Assembly (NCBI GenBank): GCA_907165135.1
Contig: OU015567.1
Span: forward strand, 15,438,001 to 15,502,000
From: Oikopleura dioica
Lineage: Eukaryota > Animalia > Chordata
Length of the DNA: 64,000 nt
Direction of reading: 5' to 3'
This document shows, piece after piece, positions 37,964 through 46,511 of this stretch; position 1 is the first letter of the stretch; every line of letters starts with the position of its first letter. The notes below the pieces were generated by a model, which saw only the letters and a list, made by a program, of their open reading frames with translations, was not told where the DNA came from and ran no database searches. The translations under genes were made by a program, and so were the position numbers.

Positions 37964-38697
37964 GGGTAATGGTATACATCGGGGCGGCGCCGCTCGCTCG
38001 ATCCGCGCTCCGCAAGAACCTATTTTCACGAGGCCGTAAAATCTGAACGGATCGAGATTTTTCGAGATTTAAACAGATTCGGAATCCTCAAAGTCTCTTC
38101 TACAAACTGATCGAAAATTATAACAATTTTCAAAAGAAACAATGTGAAAAGTGCCAGTTTCCTTCAAATGACATTTTCTCCTGAATTTCTCATCCAAATT
38201 TTTTGAAAATTAGACTGTCTTGTAGAGAATCGTCAGCTCTACAATTCCTGTTTTTCAGATTTCTGTTTTAAGCTTTTATTAATTTTACATCGCAATTTGT
38301 AAAGAGCGCTACTTCTTCTCGCGCCTCTCCGCTGCATATTTCTCGCGCCGCGCTTGGTTTGAAGCTAGAAGACATAATTTTTGAAAGCCTAAATGAAAAT
38401 TCTGAAAAACAGAAATTGTAGAGCTGACGATTCTCTACAAGACAGTCTAATTTTCAAAAAATTGGATGAGAAATTCAGGAGAAAATGTCATTTGAAGGAA
38501 ACTGGCACTTTTCACATTGTTTCTCTTTGAAAATTGTTTTAATTTTCGATCAGTTAGTAGAAGAGACTTTGAGGATTCCGAATCTGTTTAAATCTCGAAA
38601 AATCTCGATCCGTTCAGATTTAACGGCCTCGTGAGAAATAGGTTCTTGCGGAGCGCGGATCGAGCGAGCGGCGCCGCCCCGATGTATACCATTACCC
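37964..38697. mobile_element. Fold-back MITE with ~300-bp near-perfect TIRs (GG termini), 734 bp
   Basis: GGGTAATGGTATACATCGGGGCGGCGCC... mirrored by ...GGCGCCGCCCCGATGTATACCATTACCC. TTAA follows the right end; the left TTAA is absent. Confidence 0.8.
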
Positions 38698-39327: not shown

Positions 39328-40248
39328 TTAAACTATGAAAAGATATTCACAAAAAATATTTAAAGATTTTACCCAAAAGATGGTGAATTTGTTGATGGTT
39401 TCGTTGTTGTCGTCGCTAACGTTGTTGTTGTGGAAAGGTTCATATCTTTCATACAGAGGCAATTGAACTTGTGTCCGTAGCGTTTTTTAAATGAGGTAGA
39501 AATTGAGACAAAATGAAAAAATTACTGTTAATTTTGCAAAAGGTTTTCCCACTGGATTTGATTTGTATGACCGGAACTCTGTTTTTATCTTCGTGGTCAA
39601 AAAGTCGCAGTCAATTGATTTCGTGGCATCAATATGATTGCTAGGAACAGGAGCTTCCAAATTGAGGCCATCATTCAACCAAAAATGAGCTTTTTTCTCT
39701 TAGGTTAAGTACCCCATCCAAATTTTTTCGTCAGGACATTTTCCCCAAAGAAAATCTTTGATAAACTCTACTTTTTCAACAGACTCTATCTGAAGTGGTT
39801 TGTCTTGGCGAGATTCGCAGAAATCTACGCAACTATCCCAAGACATCTCTGATGATGAGCTGCTACATTCATCAAGTGCATGTGACGCGGCATTATCTCT
39901 GAAATTTCAGTGCCTTAATTGCTCCAGAAAATTTTATTTAAATTATTCAATATTTCAAAAACAAATTTTTAACCTTGTATAAAAAGCTTCAGCGGAATAT
40001 AAAAAATGAGAAAAATCTCATTTCAGAAACAAATGATTTTCTTGAAAAGAGAAACGAGTTTTTATTCAAAAAAGAAAATTTGAATTTTCATAAAAATAGA
40101 CCGCATTATGCGAGTGAGTTTTTAAAAGTTTTTGGTCATTTGGTATTTACTTGTTCCTGGTTTCTTTTCAGAATAATTCATTTTTAATGAATTTGAAATT
40201 TCATATTGGTTGTCTGAGGGTAGTCCTTGTCTGGAATTCCATTCTTAC

Positions 40249-40288
40249 CTGTCAGACAATCGAAATCAAAGTCAAAAATGGGATGAGT
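40249..40288 (-). ncRNA. Variant spliced-leader exon (SL-like gene copy) with intact GTAAGAAT donor
   Basis: ACTCATCCCATTTTTGActttGATTTCGATTGTCTgACAG|GTAAGAAT: 40 nt with 4 substitutions vs the canonical SL (G18C, C20T, C21T, A36G). Upstream ~100 bp is homologous to the canonical SL promoter. Confidence 0.85.
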
Positions 40289-40437
40289 AAAGAGAAGGGG
40301 TGCTCGATTTCGAGGACGTTTCGCTTCTGCACGCTCCCTTCGGCCTATTTTCAGAAAAACGCGCGGTAGAGGGCGCGTTTTTTCAAACTGGGAAGATCCA
40401 TTTTGAGTTTCATTCGAGTATTTTCTCTCCTATGGGG

Positions 40438-40513
40438 GAGTGGTCCGAGCTCGCCTGTACTGCAATAGCGAGTCAACCCGTGAGAAGAGCGGAGCAAGCC
40501 CCTAACTGCATCC
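40438..40513 (-). pseudogene. U2: 3' half of a U2 snRNA gene (stem-loops III-IV), truncated by a MITE
   Basis: GGATGCAGTTAGGGGCTTGCTCC...TATTGCAGTACAGGCGAGCTCGGACCAC matches the 3' part of the full copies with 3 substitutions and abuts the MITE terminus at 40514. Confidence 0.85.
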
Positions 40514-41487
40514 GACGCGCCTTTTTAAGGTTGTGGCGGTTTTCTAGCCCACTTGCGCCTTATTAAGGCTATAACCTCTCTTTTGGCCTCTCTGGAAAAC
40601 GGACTTCCCTTGGTCGATTTCAAAAATTTAAAGGGCAAACATACTTGTTTTCTCCTAAAGAATTCAAAAAGCCATCAAAAATACTTTTCTCTGGTAATTT
40701 TTTGCTCTAGAATCATTCAAAAATCGCCGATCGGTTTTCCGAGAAAACCGGAAGCTCTGAGGTAAAATAAATCCGACAATGTTATTTAGTAAAGCACATT
40801 CTATGATCCCTTTGGAAAAAATTTCAAGAAATTGTGTAAATTATGATTCTAGTTCTCTCTTCTTTTAAATCTCTTTTGTTTATAGACTGACGCTTGAGAT
40901 CCGCGCAGCCAATCAAAGCGCGATGAATCTCTTGACTCACACGCTCGCCAACAGCGCTCTCTTTTTGGCCTGGAGGATAGCACTCCGCGCAGCGCGTCCA
41001 CGCGCATTTTTATCCTCAGGTGCCAGTACTAACATGGCCCTAGAATGAAAATTTGAAGAGATTTCGAAGATTTTTCCATAGGGATTGTAGAGAAGGCTTT
41101 AATCTATTAATTGATCAAAAAATCTACCTCTGTAATGGTAAAATTCTTCGGAAAACCGATCGGCGTTTTTTAAATGATTGTAAAGTCGAAATTTCAAAAG
41201 AAAAATTAATTTTTGATCGCATTTCTGAAATCTACGATAGATTTTGAGTATATGAGTCTTTTTAATTTTTGAAATCGACCAAGGGTAGTCGGTTTTCCGA
41301 AGAGGCCAAAAGAGAGGTTATAGCCTTAACCCTAGAACACCATACCTTTTGGAATCAGCAGGAAATTCTAAGAACTTTGACCATTTTAGTTTTCGGAAAT
41401 TCTACTTCCGGTCTGATTCTAGAGCCGGAAGTTGACGAAATTGATGAGTAAGGATAAAGTGTGACCTATCAAATTGATGCTTGAATC
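40514..41487. mobile_element. GACG-terminus MITE copy D (one end only), interrupted by a nested TTAA element
   Basis: Starts GACGCGCCTTTTTAAGGTT...CTAGCCCAC and resumes CCCTAGAACACCATACC...ACTTCCGGTCTGATTCTAGAGCCGGAAGT after 41329. Other end not found. Confidence 0.7.
40567..41325. mobile_element. TTAA-flanked MITE with GG termini and ~60-bp TIRs (Kolobok-like), 759 bp
   Basis: TTAA|GGCTATAACCTCTCTTTTGGCCTCT...CCCTTGGTCGATTTCAAAAATT mirrored at the right end ...AGAGGTTATAGCC|TTAA. Removing it restores the host MITE TIR. Confidence 0.78.
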
Positions 41488-41776
41488 TTTCTCATGGAGA
41501 ATTTGAGGAGGAAAAGGAAGGTGTATTGAAGGAAAATTAACAGAAGACATTTTCTTTCTCAGACTTGGCTAAGGATGGATCGGTTTTCTGTTTGATGAAC
41601 GAATACTGGGAAGAAGGAGGACTAGGGATAGTTGTAGCATGAAGGTATTCTAGATAAAAACAGGGACTCGCTCCCCAGCGCAAGCGCCTTTCGCGCAGAA
41701 AATTCTATAAGAATCGAGAGACCATAACGCCCGTTCGAATTTGTCGATACGGACCTTCTCGAGCAGCGGGCAAGGT

Positions 41777-41961
41777 ATCGCTTCCGGCCTTTGTGGCTAA
41801 GATCAAGTGTAGTATCTGTTCTTCTCAGTGTGACAGCTGGGACCGTCCCTACTGGGACGTCTATTGTCACCCTGATTTTGGAACTAGGGATGCAGTTAGG
41901 GGCTTGCTCCGCTCTTCCCACGGGTTGACTCGCTATTGCAGTACCGGCGAGCTCGGCCCAC
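41777..41961 (+). ncRNA. U2: U2 snRNA
   Basis: ATCGCTTCCGGCCTTTGTGGCTAAGATCAAGTGTAGTATCTGTTCTT 5' end with branch-site recognition GTAGTA. Stems IIa/IIb/IIc can pair; Sm site GATTTTGG; stem IV loop TATTGCAGTA. Confidence 0.95.
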
Positions 41962-42033
41962 TCCCCATGGGGAGAAACAATTCAAACGAAACTCAAAAGG
42001 ATCTTCCCAGATGTATACGGGCGTTCACGCTCC

Positions 42034-42613
42034 GACGTGCTTTTAAGGTTAACGAAGTTTTCCAGCCCACTTCCGCCTTACAGACCCCCAACACCATACC
42101 TTTTAGAATCACCAGAGAATTTTAAGAACTTTGATGGTTTTAGATTCTAGAAAGTCCACTTCCGGTCGATTCTAGAGCCGGAAGTTGAGGAAATTTGGGA
42201 ATACTGGTAGAGTGTGACCTATCAAATCGATGCCCAGAAGATTTTGAGTCATCCTATGATCAATATATCAGAAGACATAGTCTCAAACATGGCCAAACCG
42301 ACCGGTAAAATTATGTAAAAAGCCATAAATTGATGATTTTTTCAGTTTTATTCGGTTTGTCTGACCGCGGTTCGGGTTGGTTACCCTTCCAAAAGACTAG
42401 AAATTTCACAAGCTTTAATTTAATAGGTCACATGCATGCCTTTATTAAGTTTTAAGCCAACTTCCGGCTCTAGAATCGACCGGAAGTGGACTTTTCTAGA
42501 ATCTAAAACCATCAAAGTTCTTAAAATTCTCTGGTGATTCTAAAAGGTATGGTGTTGGGGGTCTGTAAGGCGGAAGTGGGCTGGAAAACTTCGTTAACCT
42601 TAAAAAGCACGTC
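42034..42613. mobile_element. GACG-terminus MITE copy A, 580 bp, 3-bp TSD TCC
   Basis: ~150-bp TIRs GACGTGCTTTTAAGGTTAACG... / ...AACCTTAAAAAGCACGTC with TCC on both sides. The mirror arm has the empty site CACGT-TCC-GCACTC at ~45755-45770. Confidence 0.9.
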
Positions 42614-42813
42614 TCCGCACTCGCTGTCTGAAACGGAGTACTCGCTGCATTTGACATGAGTTGGACTGAGGAACTCAATAAGAAAGTTAATTGTGAGAAT
42701 ATGCCAATAAACTCATGTCCCTGATTAAACTCATTTTTCAATTAATTATTCAATTATTGAACTTATTCAACAATAAAACTTAGAATATAGTGTGACTTGA
42801 TGCGGCAGCCTTC

Positions 42814-42932
42814 GCTTAGCGTCATACCGCGTAGAATAAACCAGTTCTCGTCCGATCACTGAAGTCAAACTACGACGGGCGAGGTTAGTACTTACATGGG
42901 TGACCGGTTGGGAATACCTCGTGCGCTAAGCA
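42814..42932 (+). rRNA. 5S: 5S rRNA
   Basis: 119 nt GCTTAGCGTCATACC...AGTACTTACATGGGTGACCGGTTGGGAATACCTCGTGCGCTAAGCA with pairing ends and a TTTT Pol III terminator. Confidence 0.96.
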
Positions 42933-43188
42933 TTTTGACTTTTTCGGCACGTAAATGATTTACTAATCGTCCTTTTTGTGAGGACCCCTTTACATAAATA
43001 CTGAGTACACTGATAGCAAAGAAAAGTCACGATGTTTGTGTGAGGCAAGTATTGACAGTTGAGCGTGGCCCGGCGGGCCGCGTGGCGCTTGTGAAAAAGC
43101 GCCCTCTGTCACGCGCTTTTCTGAAAGAGGCCGAAAATAGGAGCGAGCAGCGACAAAACGACCTCGAAATCAAGCACCCCTTCTTTTT

Positions 43189-43280
43189 ACTCATCCCATT
43201 TTTGAGTCCGATTTCGATTGTCTAACAGGTAAGAATCGTCTCCATGCCCATTCTCTCCTATCCCTCTCGCCTCTTACAAA
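43189..43280 (+). ncRNA. SL: Spliced-leader RNA gene (canonical 40-nt exon 43189-43228; 3' end approximate)
   Basis: ACTCATCCCATTTTTGAGTCCGATTTCGATTGTCTAACAG|GTAAGA is the known O. dioica SL exon plus donor. Confidence 0.95.
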
Positions 43281-43291
43281 CAAGAAACTTT

Positions 43292-43883
43292 GACGTGCTT
43301 TTTTAAGGTTAAGGAAGTTATTTCACCCACTTCCTTGTTTTTAGACCATACATATTTGGAATCAGTGGAGAAAATCTAGAAACTTGACCGTTTTAGTTTT
43401 CGAAATTCACTTCCGGTTACGATTCTAGAGCCGGAAATGCACGAAATTTATAAGAAAAGCATGCATATGACCTATCAAATTAAAGCTTACAACAAGTCAA
43501 GTCATTAAGGATCAAAACCGAGTCCAACCGTCGTCAAAAACCGCCGGTAAACAACCGGTAAAAATTGAAAAAATTCTCACTAAATCATGCTTTTTTCATA
43601 GTTTTACCGGTCAGTTTAACCGCGGTTGGGACTGTTTCTTCTAATTAATCGATGATGAGATGACTGAAAATCTTCTGCGCATCCATTTGATACATCACAC
43701 TTTACCCTGACTCCAAAATTTAGCCTACTTCCGGCTCTAGAATCGCAACCGGAAGTGAATTTCGAAAAACTAAAACGGTCAAGTTTCTAGATTTTCTCCA
43801 CTGATTCCAAATATGTATGGTGTTCTGGGTCTAAAAACAAGGAAGTGGGCGAAATAACTTCCTTAACCTTAAAAAAGCACGTC
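43292..43883. mobile_element. GACG-terminus MITE copy B, 592 bp, 3-bp TSD TTT
   Basis: TIRs GACGTGCTTTTTTAAGGTTAAGG... / ...AACCTTAAAAAAGCACGTC with TTT on both sides. The mirror arm has the empty site CAAGAAAC-TTT-ATGAACAGC at ~45081-45100. Confidence 0.9.
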
Positions 43884-43954
43884 TTTATGAACAGCGGGCT
43901 CCCGCCCAGTCCAGACACTCTTAAAAAAGTGGCCGGAGATTTCTGGCCGACTTC

Positions 43955-45020
43955 GACGCGCTTTTCCAGGTGGTGGAGGTTTTCTAGCCCATTCACGCCG
44001 TATAAACCCAAGAACACCATACCTTTTGAAATCAGCAGGAGATTCTTAGAACTTTGACCATCATAGCTCTTGAAAATTCCACTTCCGGTCCGATTCTAGA
44101 GCCGGAAGTTGACGAAATTTCGGAGTAAGGATAAAGTGTGACCTATCAAATTGATTCTCAGAAGAGTCATCTCATTATCGATTCATTTAACCCGTTGCCG
44201 AGCGCGTAGCATCCTGAATGCTACGCGCGCTTTCAATGCTTTTAAGGAAAAGTTAACATTGAGAATTCTCATAAATTTTTTGATTTTATAAAATTTCAAC
44301 CTTTTTCAAATAGATCTTACGCTTTAAAATTATAAAAATATTGTTGTTTGCCGCTAGAAAATGCAAAAGAAAAAGTGAAGTCAGCCCTCGCGGCGCTTCC
44401 TTTCTATTGTTTCACAGCGCGCCATTGTCTTTTTCTCTAGACTTGAAAAACGGCGCCGCTGAAGGAACCGTCATTCTTTCTTGATTTTCGGTCTTTTACC
44501 TTTTCGGAAAATTTGTGAAAAAGTATGAATCTAGTAGAAAAGGCTTCAGTGAATACCCACAAGTAAAAATTATGAATAAAGACAAAGTAATAGTGGGAGA
44601 AAAATGCGCTCAAAGTCGTAGCATTTCGGATGCTTCGCGAGCGGCAAGCCAATGTAGCGTAGCGCTCGGCAACGGGTTAAAGAAACAAACTCAACCGCCG
44701 TCGTACCGACCGGCAAAAATATGGAAAAATGCATAAATTTATGATTTTTTTATTTTTAGCGATTGATTTGACCTCGGTCGGGATTGATTTTCTCTTGGAT
44801 GATAGGGAATCTTCTGAGAATCAATTTGATAGGTCACACTTTATCCTTACTCCGAAATTTCGTCAACTTCCGGCTCTAGAATCGGACCGGAAGTGGAATT
44901 TTCAAGAGCTATGAGGGTCAAAGTTCTAAGAATCTCCTGCTGATTTCAAAAGGTATGGTGTTCTTGGGTTTATACGGCGTGAATGGGCTAGCAAACCTCC
45001 ACCACCTGGAAAAGCGCGTC
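43955..45020. mobile_element. GACG-terminus MITE copy C at the centre of the inverted duplication (~576 bp without the nested insert)
   Basis: GACGCGCTTTTCCAGG... / ...CCTGGAAAAGCGCGTC, with the mirror extending ~210 bp. Interior is homologous to copy A. Flanks are inverted (TTC / GAA), not a direct TSD. Confidence 0.85.
44191..44676. mobile_element. piggyBac-type MITE, 486 bp, nested in MITE C
   Basis: TTAA|CCCGTTGCCGAGCGC ... GCGCTCGGCAACGGG|TTAA (15-bp perfect TIR). Subterminal palindrome CGTAGCAT....ATGCTACG at the left end and, with a spacer, at the right end. Confidence 0.88.
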
Positions 45021-45100
45021 GAAGTCGGCCAGAAATCTCCGGCCACCTTTTTTAAGAGTGTCTGGACTGGGCGGGAGCCCGCTGTTCATAAAGTTTCTTG

Positions 45101-45192
45101 TTTGTAAGAGGCGAGAGGGATAGGAGAGAGTGGGCATGGAGACGATTCTTACCTGTTAGACAATCGAAATCGGACTCAAAAATGGGATGAGT
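45101..45192 (-). ncRNA. SL: Spliced-leader RNA gene, second canonical copy (exon 45153-45192)
   Basis: Exact reverse complement of the 40-nt SL exon followed by GTAAGA. One substitution in the intron moiety vs copy 1. Confidence 0.95.
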
Positions 45193-45456
45193 AAAGAGAA
45201 GGGGTGCTTGATTTCGAGGTCGTTTTGTCGCTGCTCGCTCCTATTTTCGGCCTCTTTTCAGAAAAGCGCGTGACAGAGGGCGCTTTTTCACAAGCGCCAC
45301 GCCGCCCGCCGGGCCACGCTCAACGCTCAATGCTTGTCTCCCACAAACATGGTGACTTTTTCTCTATCAGTGTATCAAATTAGCTCGATTTATCTTATTT
45401 GCAATTTAAAGGGGTCCTCACAAAAAGGATGATCTACTTCCTGAAAAAAGTCAAAA

Positions 45457-45575
45457 TGCTTAGCGCACGAGGTATTCCCAACCGGTCACCCATGTAAGTA
45501 CTAACCCCGCCCGTCGTAGTTTGACTTCAGTGATCGGACGAGAACTGGTTTATTCTACGCGGTATGACGCTAAGC
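45457..45575 (-). rRNA. 5S: 5S rRNA, second copy
   Basis: Reverse complement of 42814-42932 with one substitution (GGGCGGGG vs GGGCGAGG). TTTT terminator. Confidence 0.96.
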
Positions 45576-45847
45576 GAAGGCTTCTCCTTCAAGTCACATT
45601 ATATACTGAGTTTTACTTTTGAATTAGTTCAATTATTGAATAAAGAAGGGGAAAAATGGACATGAGTTTATTGGTATGTTCACGCGATTGAACTTCTTTT
45701 TGAGTTCATCACTGCGACACGTCTCAAACGCACCGACAACTCCGTTTCAGACATTGAGTGCGGAACGTGGACGCCTGTATTTAACTGGATCTCCAGTTTC
45801 TAAATCTGTTTTGAGTCTCATTTGGATTGTTTCTCCCCCGTGGGGGA

Positions 45848-46033
45848 GTGGGCCGAGCTCGCCGGTACTGCAATAGCGAGTCAACCCGTGGGAAGAGCGG
45901 AGCAAGCCCCTAACTGCATCCCTAGTTCCAAAAATCAGGGTGACAATAGACGTCCCAGTAGGGACGGTCCCAGCTGTCACACTGAGAAGAACAGATACTA
46001 CACTTGATCTTAGCCACAAAGGCCGGAAGCGAT
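45848..46033 (-). ncRNA. U2: U2 snRNA, second full copy
   Basis: Reverse complement of copy 1 except for a canonical five-U Sm site (GATTTTTGG). Confidence 0.95.
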
Positions 46034-46511
46034 ACCTTGCCCGCTGCTCGAGAAGGTCCGTATCGACAAATTCGAACGGGCGTTATGGTCTCTCGATTCT
46101 TATAGAATTTTCTGCGCGAAAGGCGCTTGCGCTGGGGAGCGAGTCCCTGTTTTTTATCTAGAATACCTTCATGCTACAACTATCCCTAGTCCTCCTTCTT
46201 CCCAGTATTCGTTCATCAAACAGAAAACCGATCCATCCTTAGCCAAGTCTGAGAAACAAAATTTATTCAGCATAAATTACGTCTAATGAATGTCTTGTCT
46301 GGGCTCTTACTCAATAATCTCCTGTCAATTTTCCTTCAATACACCTTCCTTTTCCTACTTAAAATTCTCCATGAGAAACACTCAAGGTTATTTTTAACTC
46401 AGAATGACCCAAAACAAGCAACAGTTGACCTAGAAAAGGAAGAGCCGTGGGGGATTTGCACTTGGCTTGATATTGACATTTTTTTATCAAGATCTCGCTG
46501 ACTGTTTTTGC

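Follow-up and report, generated by a model that had tools for sequence, protein, structure and literature searches.

Fold-back of DNA at an inverted repeat primes palindromes, as in Tetrahymena rDNA and in gene amplification in yeast and mammals. Once a palindrome exists, its arms can undergo arm-to-arm gene conversion, as in the ampliconic palindromes of the human Y chromosome. MITEs and foldback-type class II elements with 3-bp TSDs include PIF/Harbinger, CACTA, and Zator-like elements. Annealing of inverted repeats in resected DNA, followed by tail removal, is an established fold-back route that tolerates up to 25% heterology, and for inverted Alu repeats in single-stranded DNA the pathway has been demonstrated in yeast (PMC10164571). 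In the chordate Oikopleura dioica, 5S rRNA and SL genes are arranged as inverted repeats. Bliznina et al. 2021 (PMC8008620) cite Ganot et al. 2004 for more than 40 copies of 5S/SL, and themselves report 27 5S-SL copies in the OKI2018_I69 genome, 22 of which are in inverted pairs. The published 5S/SL coordinates chr1:8487589-8879731 (PMC8008620) coincide with our matches at C4:8487588 and C4:8879736. The gene arrangement and the fold-back principle are therefore known. A MITE family as the recurrent pivot appears to be new, as the literature searched, which excluded Ganot et al. 2004 itself, makes no mention of a transposon at the 5S-SL symmetry centre.

We analyzed a stretch of 64,000 nucleotides from OKI2018_I69 (C5:15438001-15502000), referred to as the window, and searched the genome (64.28 Mb, 19 contigs) for related loci; coordinates given without a contig are positions in the window. 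An inverted pair of U2-5S-SL units occupies 41482-43954 (left arm, + strand; self-inverted BLAST and global arm alignment) and 45021-46386 (right arm, - strand; BLAST and arm alignment). The left arm consists of the U2 upstream region, the U2 snRNA gene (41777-41966, + strand; Rfam RF00004, 147.7 bits), the 5S rRNA gene (42814-42932, + strand; Rfam RF00001, 96.6 bits), the SL gene, and a locus-specific flank of 68-71 bp. It is interrupted by two transposon copies, MITE A and MITE B, and position 41482 marks the end of its homology to the right arm in the arm alignment. The 40-nt SL exon (43189-43228, + strand) is an exact match to the 40-mer printed in an O. dioica trans-splicing paper and is followed by a GTAAG donor. 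Rfam returned no match to the SL RNA, even at E = 1, and its identity rests on the literature 40-mer.

The right arm carries the flank, SL, 5S, U2, and U2 upstream region in mirror order on the - strand. Its SL exon (45153-45192) is the reverse complement of the 40-mer, and its 5S and U2 genes lie at 45457-45575 (Rfam RF00001, 97 bits) and 45843-46033 (Rfam RF00004, 155.5 bits). The SL region is 99% identical to that of the left arm by BLAST. MITE A and MITE B are missing from this arm, which has an additional stretch of 54 bp near its outer end. With 5S and SL in each of two inverted arms, the locus is a member of the O. dioica 5S-SL inverted repeat family; 5S is followed by SL in each arm and the SL genes are convergent, as in the described repeats, but the arms of this locus extend to U2. 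No other locus in the genome links U2 to 5S. A degenerate third unit at 40241-40513 (- strand) contains a variant SL gene (91% by BLAST), whose exon has three differences from the canonical 40-mer, and the 3' half of U2 (96% by BLAST). Its SL promoter is joined straight to the U2 3' flank, 5S being absent between them, and the terminus of a further transposon copy, MITE D, truncates U2 at position 112. At 37964-38697, the window also contains a 734-bp foldback-like element that is almost fully self-complementary, has GGGGTAATGG termini, and is unrelated to the GACGYGC family described below.

An earlier sequence-only reading had placed a MITE exactly on the symmetry axis, and our alignment agrees: both arms run flush to a single element, MITE C (43955-45020, + strand). 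The junctions read gccgacTTC/GACGCGC on the left and GCGCGTC/GAAgtcggc on the right, where the slash marks the end of the arm or element. The flanking triplets, TTC at 43952-43954 and GAA at 45021-45023 (both read from the + strand sequence), are reverse complements, so that MITE C has no direct TSD, and the locus-specific flank beside it is mirrored over 68 bp with a single indel. In contrast, MITE A (42034-42613, + strand; 580 bp; termini GACGTGC...GCACGTC) and MITE B (43292-43883, + strand; 592 bp) are ordinary insertions with the direct TSDs TCC/TCC and TTT/TTT, a difference from MITE C that the same reading had correctly described. The target sites of MITE A and MITE B are empty at the mirror positions of the right arm, which is evidence of mobility. 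An inverted repeat of 246 nt (43923-44168 and 44807-45052, 98% complementary) spans each end of MITE C and the adjoining flank. Within it, the left TIR (43955-44168, + strand; 214 nt) is 99% complementary to the right TIR (44807-45020, - strand), and the two enclose 638 nt of non-mirrored interior. In single-stranded form, the ends of MITE C are predicted to pair over about 214 bp, giving a stem interrupted by three mismatches. MITE C contains no ORF longer than 77 aa, and those present are mechanical ORFs only.

MITE C had been taken for a full-length MITE of 1,066 bp, a description that has to be corrected. Other copies match its positions 1-211 and 726-1066 contiguously, and positions 232-729 match a different repeat family. 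MITE C is thus a 576-bp host MITE (43955-44190 plus 44681-45020) with an unrelated nested element of 486 bp (44191-44676, + strand), and subtracting this insertion brings the host to the normal size of its family. The TIRs of the nested element begin CCCGTTGCC, and TTAA is present on either side, at 44187-44190 and 44677-44680; TTAA duplication and CCC...GGG termini identify it as a piggyBac-like MITE. Seven further full-length copies are found elsewhere, each with TTAA on both sides, and an eighth is shortened at one end and lacks the TTAA pair. Eight of nine copies, including the nested one, therefore have the form TTAA-CCCGTTGCC...GGCAACGGG-TTAA. The piggyBac-type family as a whole comprises at least 10 copies of about 490 bp that have TTAA duplications and CCCGTTGCCGAGCGCG termini and are 77-93% identical.

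The host family comprises elements of about 590 bp (576-596 bp) that have 3-bp TSDs and, in all copies, the termini GACGYGC...GCRCGTC. A terminal-pattern search of the genome yielded 192 termini, compared with one control match, indicating about 100 copies. Our census of TSDs and TIRs covers the genomic loci retrieved; all 20 full-length copies in it that lie off a palindrome axis are flanked by a direct 3-bp TSD. Conserved-terminus TIRs, the fixed 3-bp TSD, empty sites, and small size without a transposase gene place the family among the MITEs. The long TIRs, 3-bp TSD, lack of coding capacity, copy number of about 100, and empty sites resemble those of other class II elements with 3-bp TSDs. 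The family differs from PIF/Harbinger, CACTA, and Zator-like elements in that its TSDs are not restricted to TWA and its GACGYGC termini are not CACTA. MITE D (40514-41481, + strand; detected by BLAST to C, A, and B and as inverted repeats I5 and I20) is a truncated copy that adjoins the outer end of the left arm. Its terminus occupies 40514-40566, and 41328-41481 corresponds to family positions 51-204; the sequence separating the two parts is unrelated.

The longer mirrored ends of MITE C had been read as a signature of fold-back. The lengths themselves are real (214 nt in C at 99%, 154 nt in A, and 158 nt in B), but the interpretation is not upheld. Among TSD-bearing copies, TIR length ranges from 202 to 327 nt, and several have TIRs of 215-227 nt with an identity of 96-99%, so a mirror of about 214 nt is a family trait and A and B are the short outliers. 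The two ends of MITE C share 99% identity with each other, compared with only 88% to the nearest other copy. Judging from sequence comparison, this suggests that the insertion is old and that its ends were afterward homogenized together with the flanks, which would fit both a re-centring of an older palindrome and the seeding of the whole unit and does not decide between them. Alternatively, MITE C could represent a rare subfamily and have inserted recently; one ordinary copy, at C5:11935681, likewise has ends that are alike but divergent from other copies.

The 5S-SL units occupy about 0.16% of the genome, and 28 of the 192 MITE termini, counted by eye, fall no more than about 1.5 kb from one; the family clearly prefers, or survives in, SL 3' regions. 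An Rfam search of 16 MITE loci for small RNA genes beside free copies gave only one U5. One full-length family MITE (C1:12697253-12697856) and a lone U2 gene (C1:12698373-12698588) are separated by about 520 bp, and the association may extend to snRNA genes in general. Another (C4:12015420-12016009) is inserted in an SL exon with the TSD TAG and splits that SL gene copy. At C5:14004351-14004462, mirrored in the C5:14008 pair, there is an internally deleted "micro" MITE of about 75 bp that keeps both termini. It is followed by a solo terminus and occupies the centre of a 5S-SL pair with arms of only 75-86% identity.

We then examined the centres of other 5S-SL palindromes. The genome contains about 17 convergent 5S-SL pairs with SL genes facing each other, of which we inspected 15, leaving out C4:8878486 and C1:14491468; the cluster at C4:12011-12018k is at most partly covered by this census. 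Sequence of the MITE family was present in 13 of the 15 centres, and two centres showed no MITE. Termini of the family are also seen at the 5S-SL centre of C5:7682. The earlier suggestion that other SL/5S palindromes might centre on the same family was thereby borne out, with five elements flush at independent junctions, each placed differently with respect to SL. These five intact axis elements are MITE C (flanks TTC/GAA), C1:13436019-13436606 (TTT/AAA), C1:13821571-13823509 (AGT/ACT), C2:5493564-5494450 (TAT/ATA), and C2:5591799-5592567 (TTT/AAA), the last having only its 18-nt termini in common with the family. All five have reverse-complement flanks, mirrored for at least 60 bp, and none has a direct TSD. 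Because transposition in this family always leaves a direct TSD, the axis copies without one did not arise by ordinary insertion. At two further loci (C1:13738163 and C1:8116806), the axis MITE is symmetrically truncated, with the same terminal stretch missing on both sides. Such a structure would be impossible by transposition but can be explained by mirror copying.

Most sister pairs are 99-100% identical over the whole 5S-SL unit. At C1:13821, C2:5591, and C1:12658, arms of 99-100% identity reach 290-670 bp into locus-specific DNA, which means that in-situ inverted duplications do occur around these MITEs. In the other pairs, the outer arm limits fall at a common unit boundary, 2-57 bp upstream of 5S. 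We also considered whole 5S-SL palindromes as mobile long-TIR elements and rejected this, as the outer limits have no TSDs or conserved termini.

Two sister loci bear on how the axis MITEs acquired their mirrored flanks. At C2:5493564, the flanks are identical at 479 of 480 positions, whereas the TIRs have 17 mismatches in 215 (8%, within the heterology tolerated by Alu-type fold-back; PMC10164571), and both TIRs are 99.5% matches to the equivalent ends of an ordinary copy elsewhere. Copying of the flank primed by the TIRs would predict an identity step of this kind, located precisely where the MITE ends. At C1:13436, the outer 500 bp of the right arm matches a neighbouring unit at 94-100% and bears no relation to the left arm; from a point some 130 bp upstream of SL, the arm becomes a mirror of the left arm and stays so through the MITE. 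A partner arm must therefore have existed first, and its inner part alone was rewritten. The surrounding region (C1:13432196-13438586) contains three 5S-SL units in a row, and the right arm of its palindrome is a recombinant of the upstream single unit (outer part) and the mirror of the adjacent left arm (inner part).

Palindromes flush on a MITE without a TSD also occur away from 5S, at C2:1157317 and C1:15662189. We rejected these as palindromes made by the MITE from ordinary DNA, as the arms turned out to be long TIRs belonging to a different transposon. This foldback-type transposon has GGGARRTTTCA termini and its own 3-bp TSD in three of three copies (loci C2:1156793-1158879, C1:15661651-15663482, and C5:10988203-10990130; TSDs TTA, TTT, and TGA), and one copy has no MITE. 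The palindrome thus came first there, a sequence of events that supports re-centring and not seeding. The 540-870-bp arms of this transposon contain an SL-like promoter and a start that resembles the SL exon, and the arm sequence forms further inverted pairs at C5:11752022, C1:8415590, C4:5755451, and C5:5408751.

Identity between the arms of the window palindrome is a mosaic. The TIRs, the 68-bp flank, the SL gene, and 127 bp upstream of it are about 98.4% identical, as against 65-77%, with indels, in the 5S-proximal half of the 5S-SL spacer. Identity is 99% in the 5S gene, about 75% in the U2-5S spacer, and 99.5% in U2 and 205 bp upstream, where the only differences are two homopolymer indels, which may be sequencing errors. 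The outermost 67 bp is about 88% identical, apart from the 54-bp indel. The locus thus resembles a product of fold-back in having an inverted repeat with an asymmetric spacer on its axis, arms that start exactly at the repeat ends, and one mirrored flank. Identity in unconstrained sequence is not uniform, and the arms do not appear to be of one age. A single copying event predicts uniform identity, so the mosaic calls for at least two further events under any model. In the 5S-SL spacer, the two arms are each other's best match (84%, compared with at most 79% for other loci). As there is also no second U2-5S locus, the diverged middle reflects old shared ancestry, and ectopic replacement of this block from another locus is unlikely.

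The sequence-only reading had proposed that the MITE created the duplication: after a break, one TIR would fold onto the other and prime the copying of the whole U2-5S-SL unit of about 1.4 kb. We regard this as possible but doubtful. Its geometric part stands, as the arms are flush on an axis MITE without a TSD, the pattern recurs, and the identity step at C2:5493 is of the kind expected. The locus-specific U2 and upstream DNA, 99.5% identical between the arms, indicates duplication in situ, as do the locus-specific arms at C1:13821 and C2:5591, and MITE C, at 12% divergence from its relatives, could be as old as the diverged arm spacers. Creation of the whole unit is harder to reconcile with an identity that drops to 65-77% around 5S from about 98-99.5% elsewhere, which demands one or more additional events of conversion or replacement. 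It also has to accommodate the pre-existing partner arm at C1:13436, the outer limits of other pairs at the unit boundary, which fit homogenization of partners already present, the two MITE-less centres among 15, and the long-TIR palindromes without a MITE elsewhere. The mirror of about 210 nt cited in its favour is the family norm, and TTC is absent from both outer junctions, where a break exactly at the MITE end would predict a second copy of the TSD.

A quite different route would begin with MITEs at mirror positions in both arms, placed there by arm-to-arm conversion or by two separate insertions. The TIRs make inverted copies of the MITE direct repeats of each other, so that after a central break single-strand annealing could leave one copy on the axis. 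States resembling the intermediate exist at C1:13724 and C5:13102, where both arms carry separate TSD-bearing MITEs; but the insertion sites at C1:13724 are offset by 2-3 bp and would give asymmetric flanks, an exact mirror copy would be needed first for each of the five symmetric junctions, and the match of the right-arm SL at C1:13436 to the left arm instead of to its own relative would stay unexplained. We therefore consider this collapse improbable. Insertion into an existing palindrome centre, by chance or site preference, with later loss of the TSD by mutation or deletion, draws on the enrichment of the family in SL 3' regions and on the TSD-bearing insertions found in arms and centres. 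Such an insertion would leave a direct 3-bp repeat and asymmetric flanks, in contrast to the mirrored flanks of all five intact axis copies, and could not yield symmetrically truncated termini, which makes it very unlikely. Least credible of all is an artefact of the nanopore-based assembly, through a mis-join or a mirrored collapse. Inverted chimeras are known in long-read data, and several arm differences are single-base homopolymer indels; yet the arms also differ by two MITE insertions and the 54-bp indel, their spacers have diverged by 16-25%, 638 nt at the centre are asymmetric, and the same architecture recurs at many loci, 5S-SL inverted repeats having been reported independently.

The account that we favour over creation of the whole duplication, tentatively and at somewhat less than an even chance, is that a mirror-copy repair, pivoting on the MITE TIRs, gave an older palindrome a new centre, with patchy conversion afterward. 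We infer the break, the annealing of the TIRs, and the order of events from divergence in one genome, where gene conversion can reset divergence. The starting state would have been a pair of SL genes already in convergent orientation; MITE C would have inserted into a TTC of their common spacer, 68 bp past one of them. A break adjacent to the element would have exposed single-stranded DNA, and the 214-nt TIRs could then have annealed, either as an intrastrand fold-back or through synthesis-dependent annealing with the partner SL gene, involving the new strand and the other broken end. Once the non-homologous tail was clipped, synthesis would have proceeded outward with the SL-side flank as template and continued until the new strand was able to pair with the SL gene on the other side. 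Such a repair would remove the old spacer along with one copy of the TSD, and the arms would end flush on MITE C. Where an inverted partner lay across the break, the palindrome would be re-centred; where none did, a new arm would be made. Patchy arm-to-arm gene conversion would since have kept the SL-to-MITE and U2 blocks near-identical while the 5S spacers drifted. MITE A and MITE B would have arrived later, as may have the nested TTAA element.

Some features of the locus count against re-centring. The arms hold locus-specific DNA (U2 and its upstream region), so an in-situ inverted duplication must have happened here once, and the simplest single-event account is fold-back of the whole unit. 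Under re-centring, the 99.5% identity of the U2 block requires a separate conversion tract. The copied segment may have been the whole U2-5S-SL unit or only about 0.3-0.5 kb laid onto an existing partner.

Compared with fold-back-primed inverted duplications, such as those in humans (PMC3907307) and those arising from Alu inverted repeats (PMC10164571), the O. dioica cases are alike in having an inverted repeat on the axis, an asymmetric loop, and arms that start exactly at the repeat ends. They differ in that they are germline-fixed, only 1-2 kb long, without a dicentric chromosome, and recurrent at one gene family, in that the inverted repeat is a mobile element, and in that some new strands seem to have landed on an existing inverted partner, as in re-centring. 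The arms are near-identical in blocks, as in human Y-type palindromes, but the identity here is patchy, and conversion alone cannot explain a flush axis transposon without a TSD.

A broader reading, speculative and in our judgment probably too sweeping, is that the long TIRs of this MITE family are a general engine of the 5S-SL and SL-like inverted-repeat organization in O. dioica. MITEs would gather downstream of SL-type genes, and repair by TIR fold-back would create, re-centre, and homogenize convergent pairs. If this is true, the amplification and concerted evolution of RNA genes for trans-splicing and the ribosome would be transposon-driven. To our knowledge, most other examples of fold-back repair mediated by inverted repeats come from yeast models, ciliate rDNA, and tumours, and the recurrent axis pattern would be a natural, germline-fixed example. 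The 5S-SL inverted-repeat arrangement has been reported since 2004, and the literature searched contained no mechanism for it. The MITE would link a mobile element to the copy number and homogenization of genes on which every trans-spliced mRNA depends, and would offer a testable reason why the very rearrangement-prone genome of O. dioica keeps its 5S-SL genes as palindromes.
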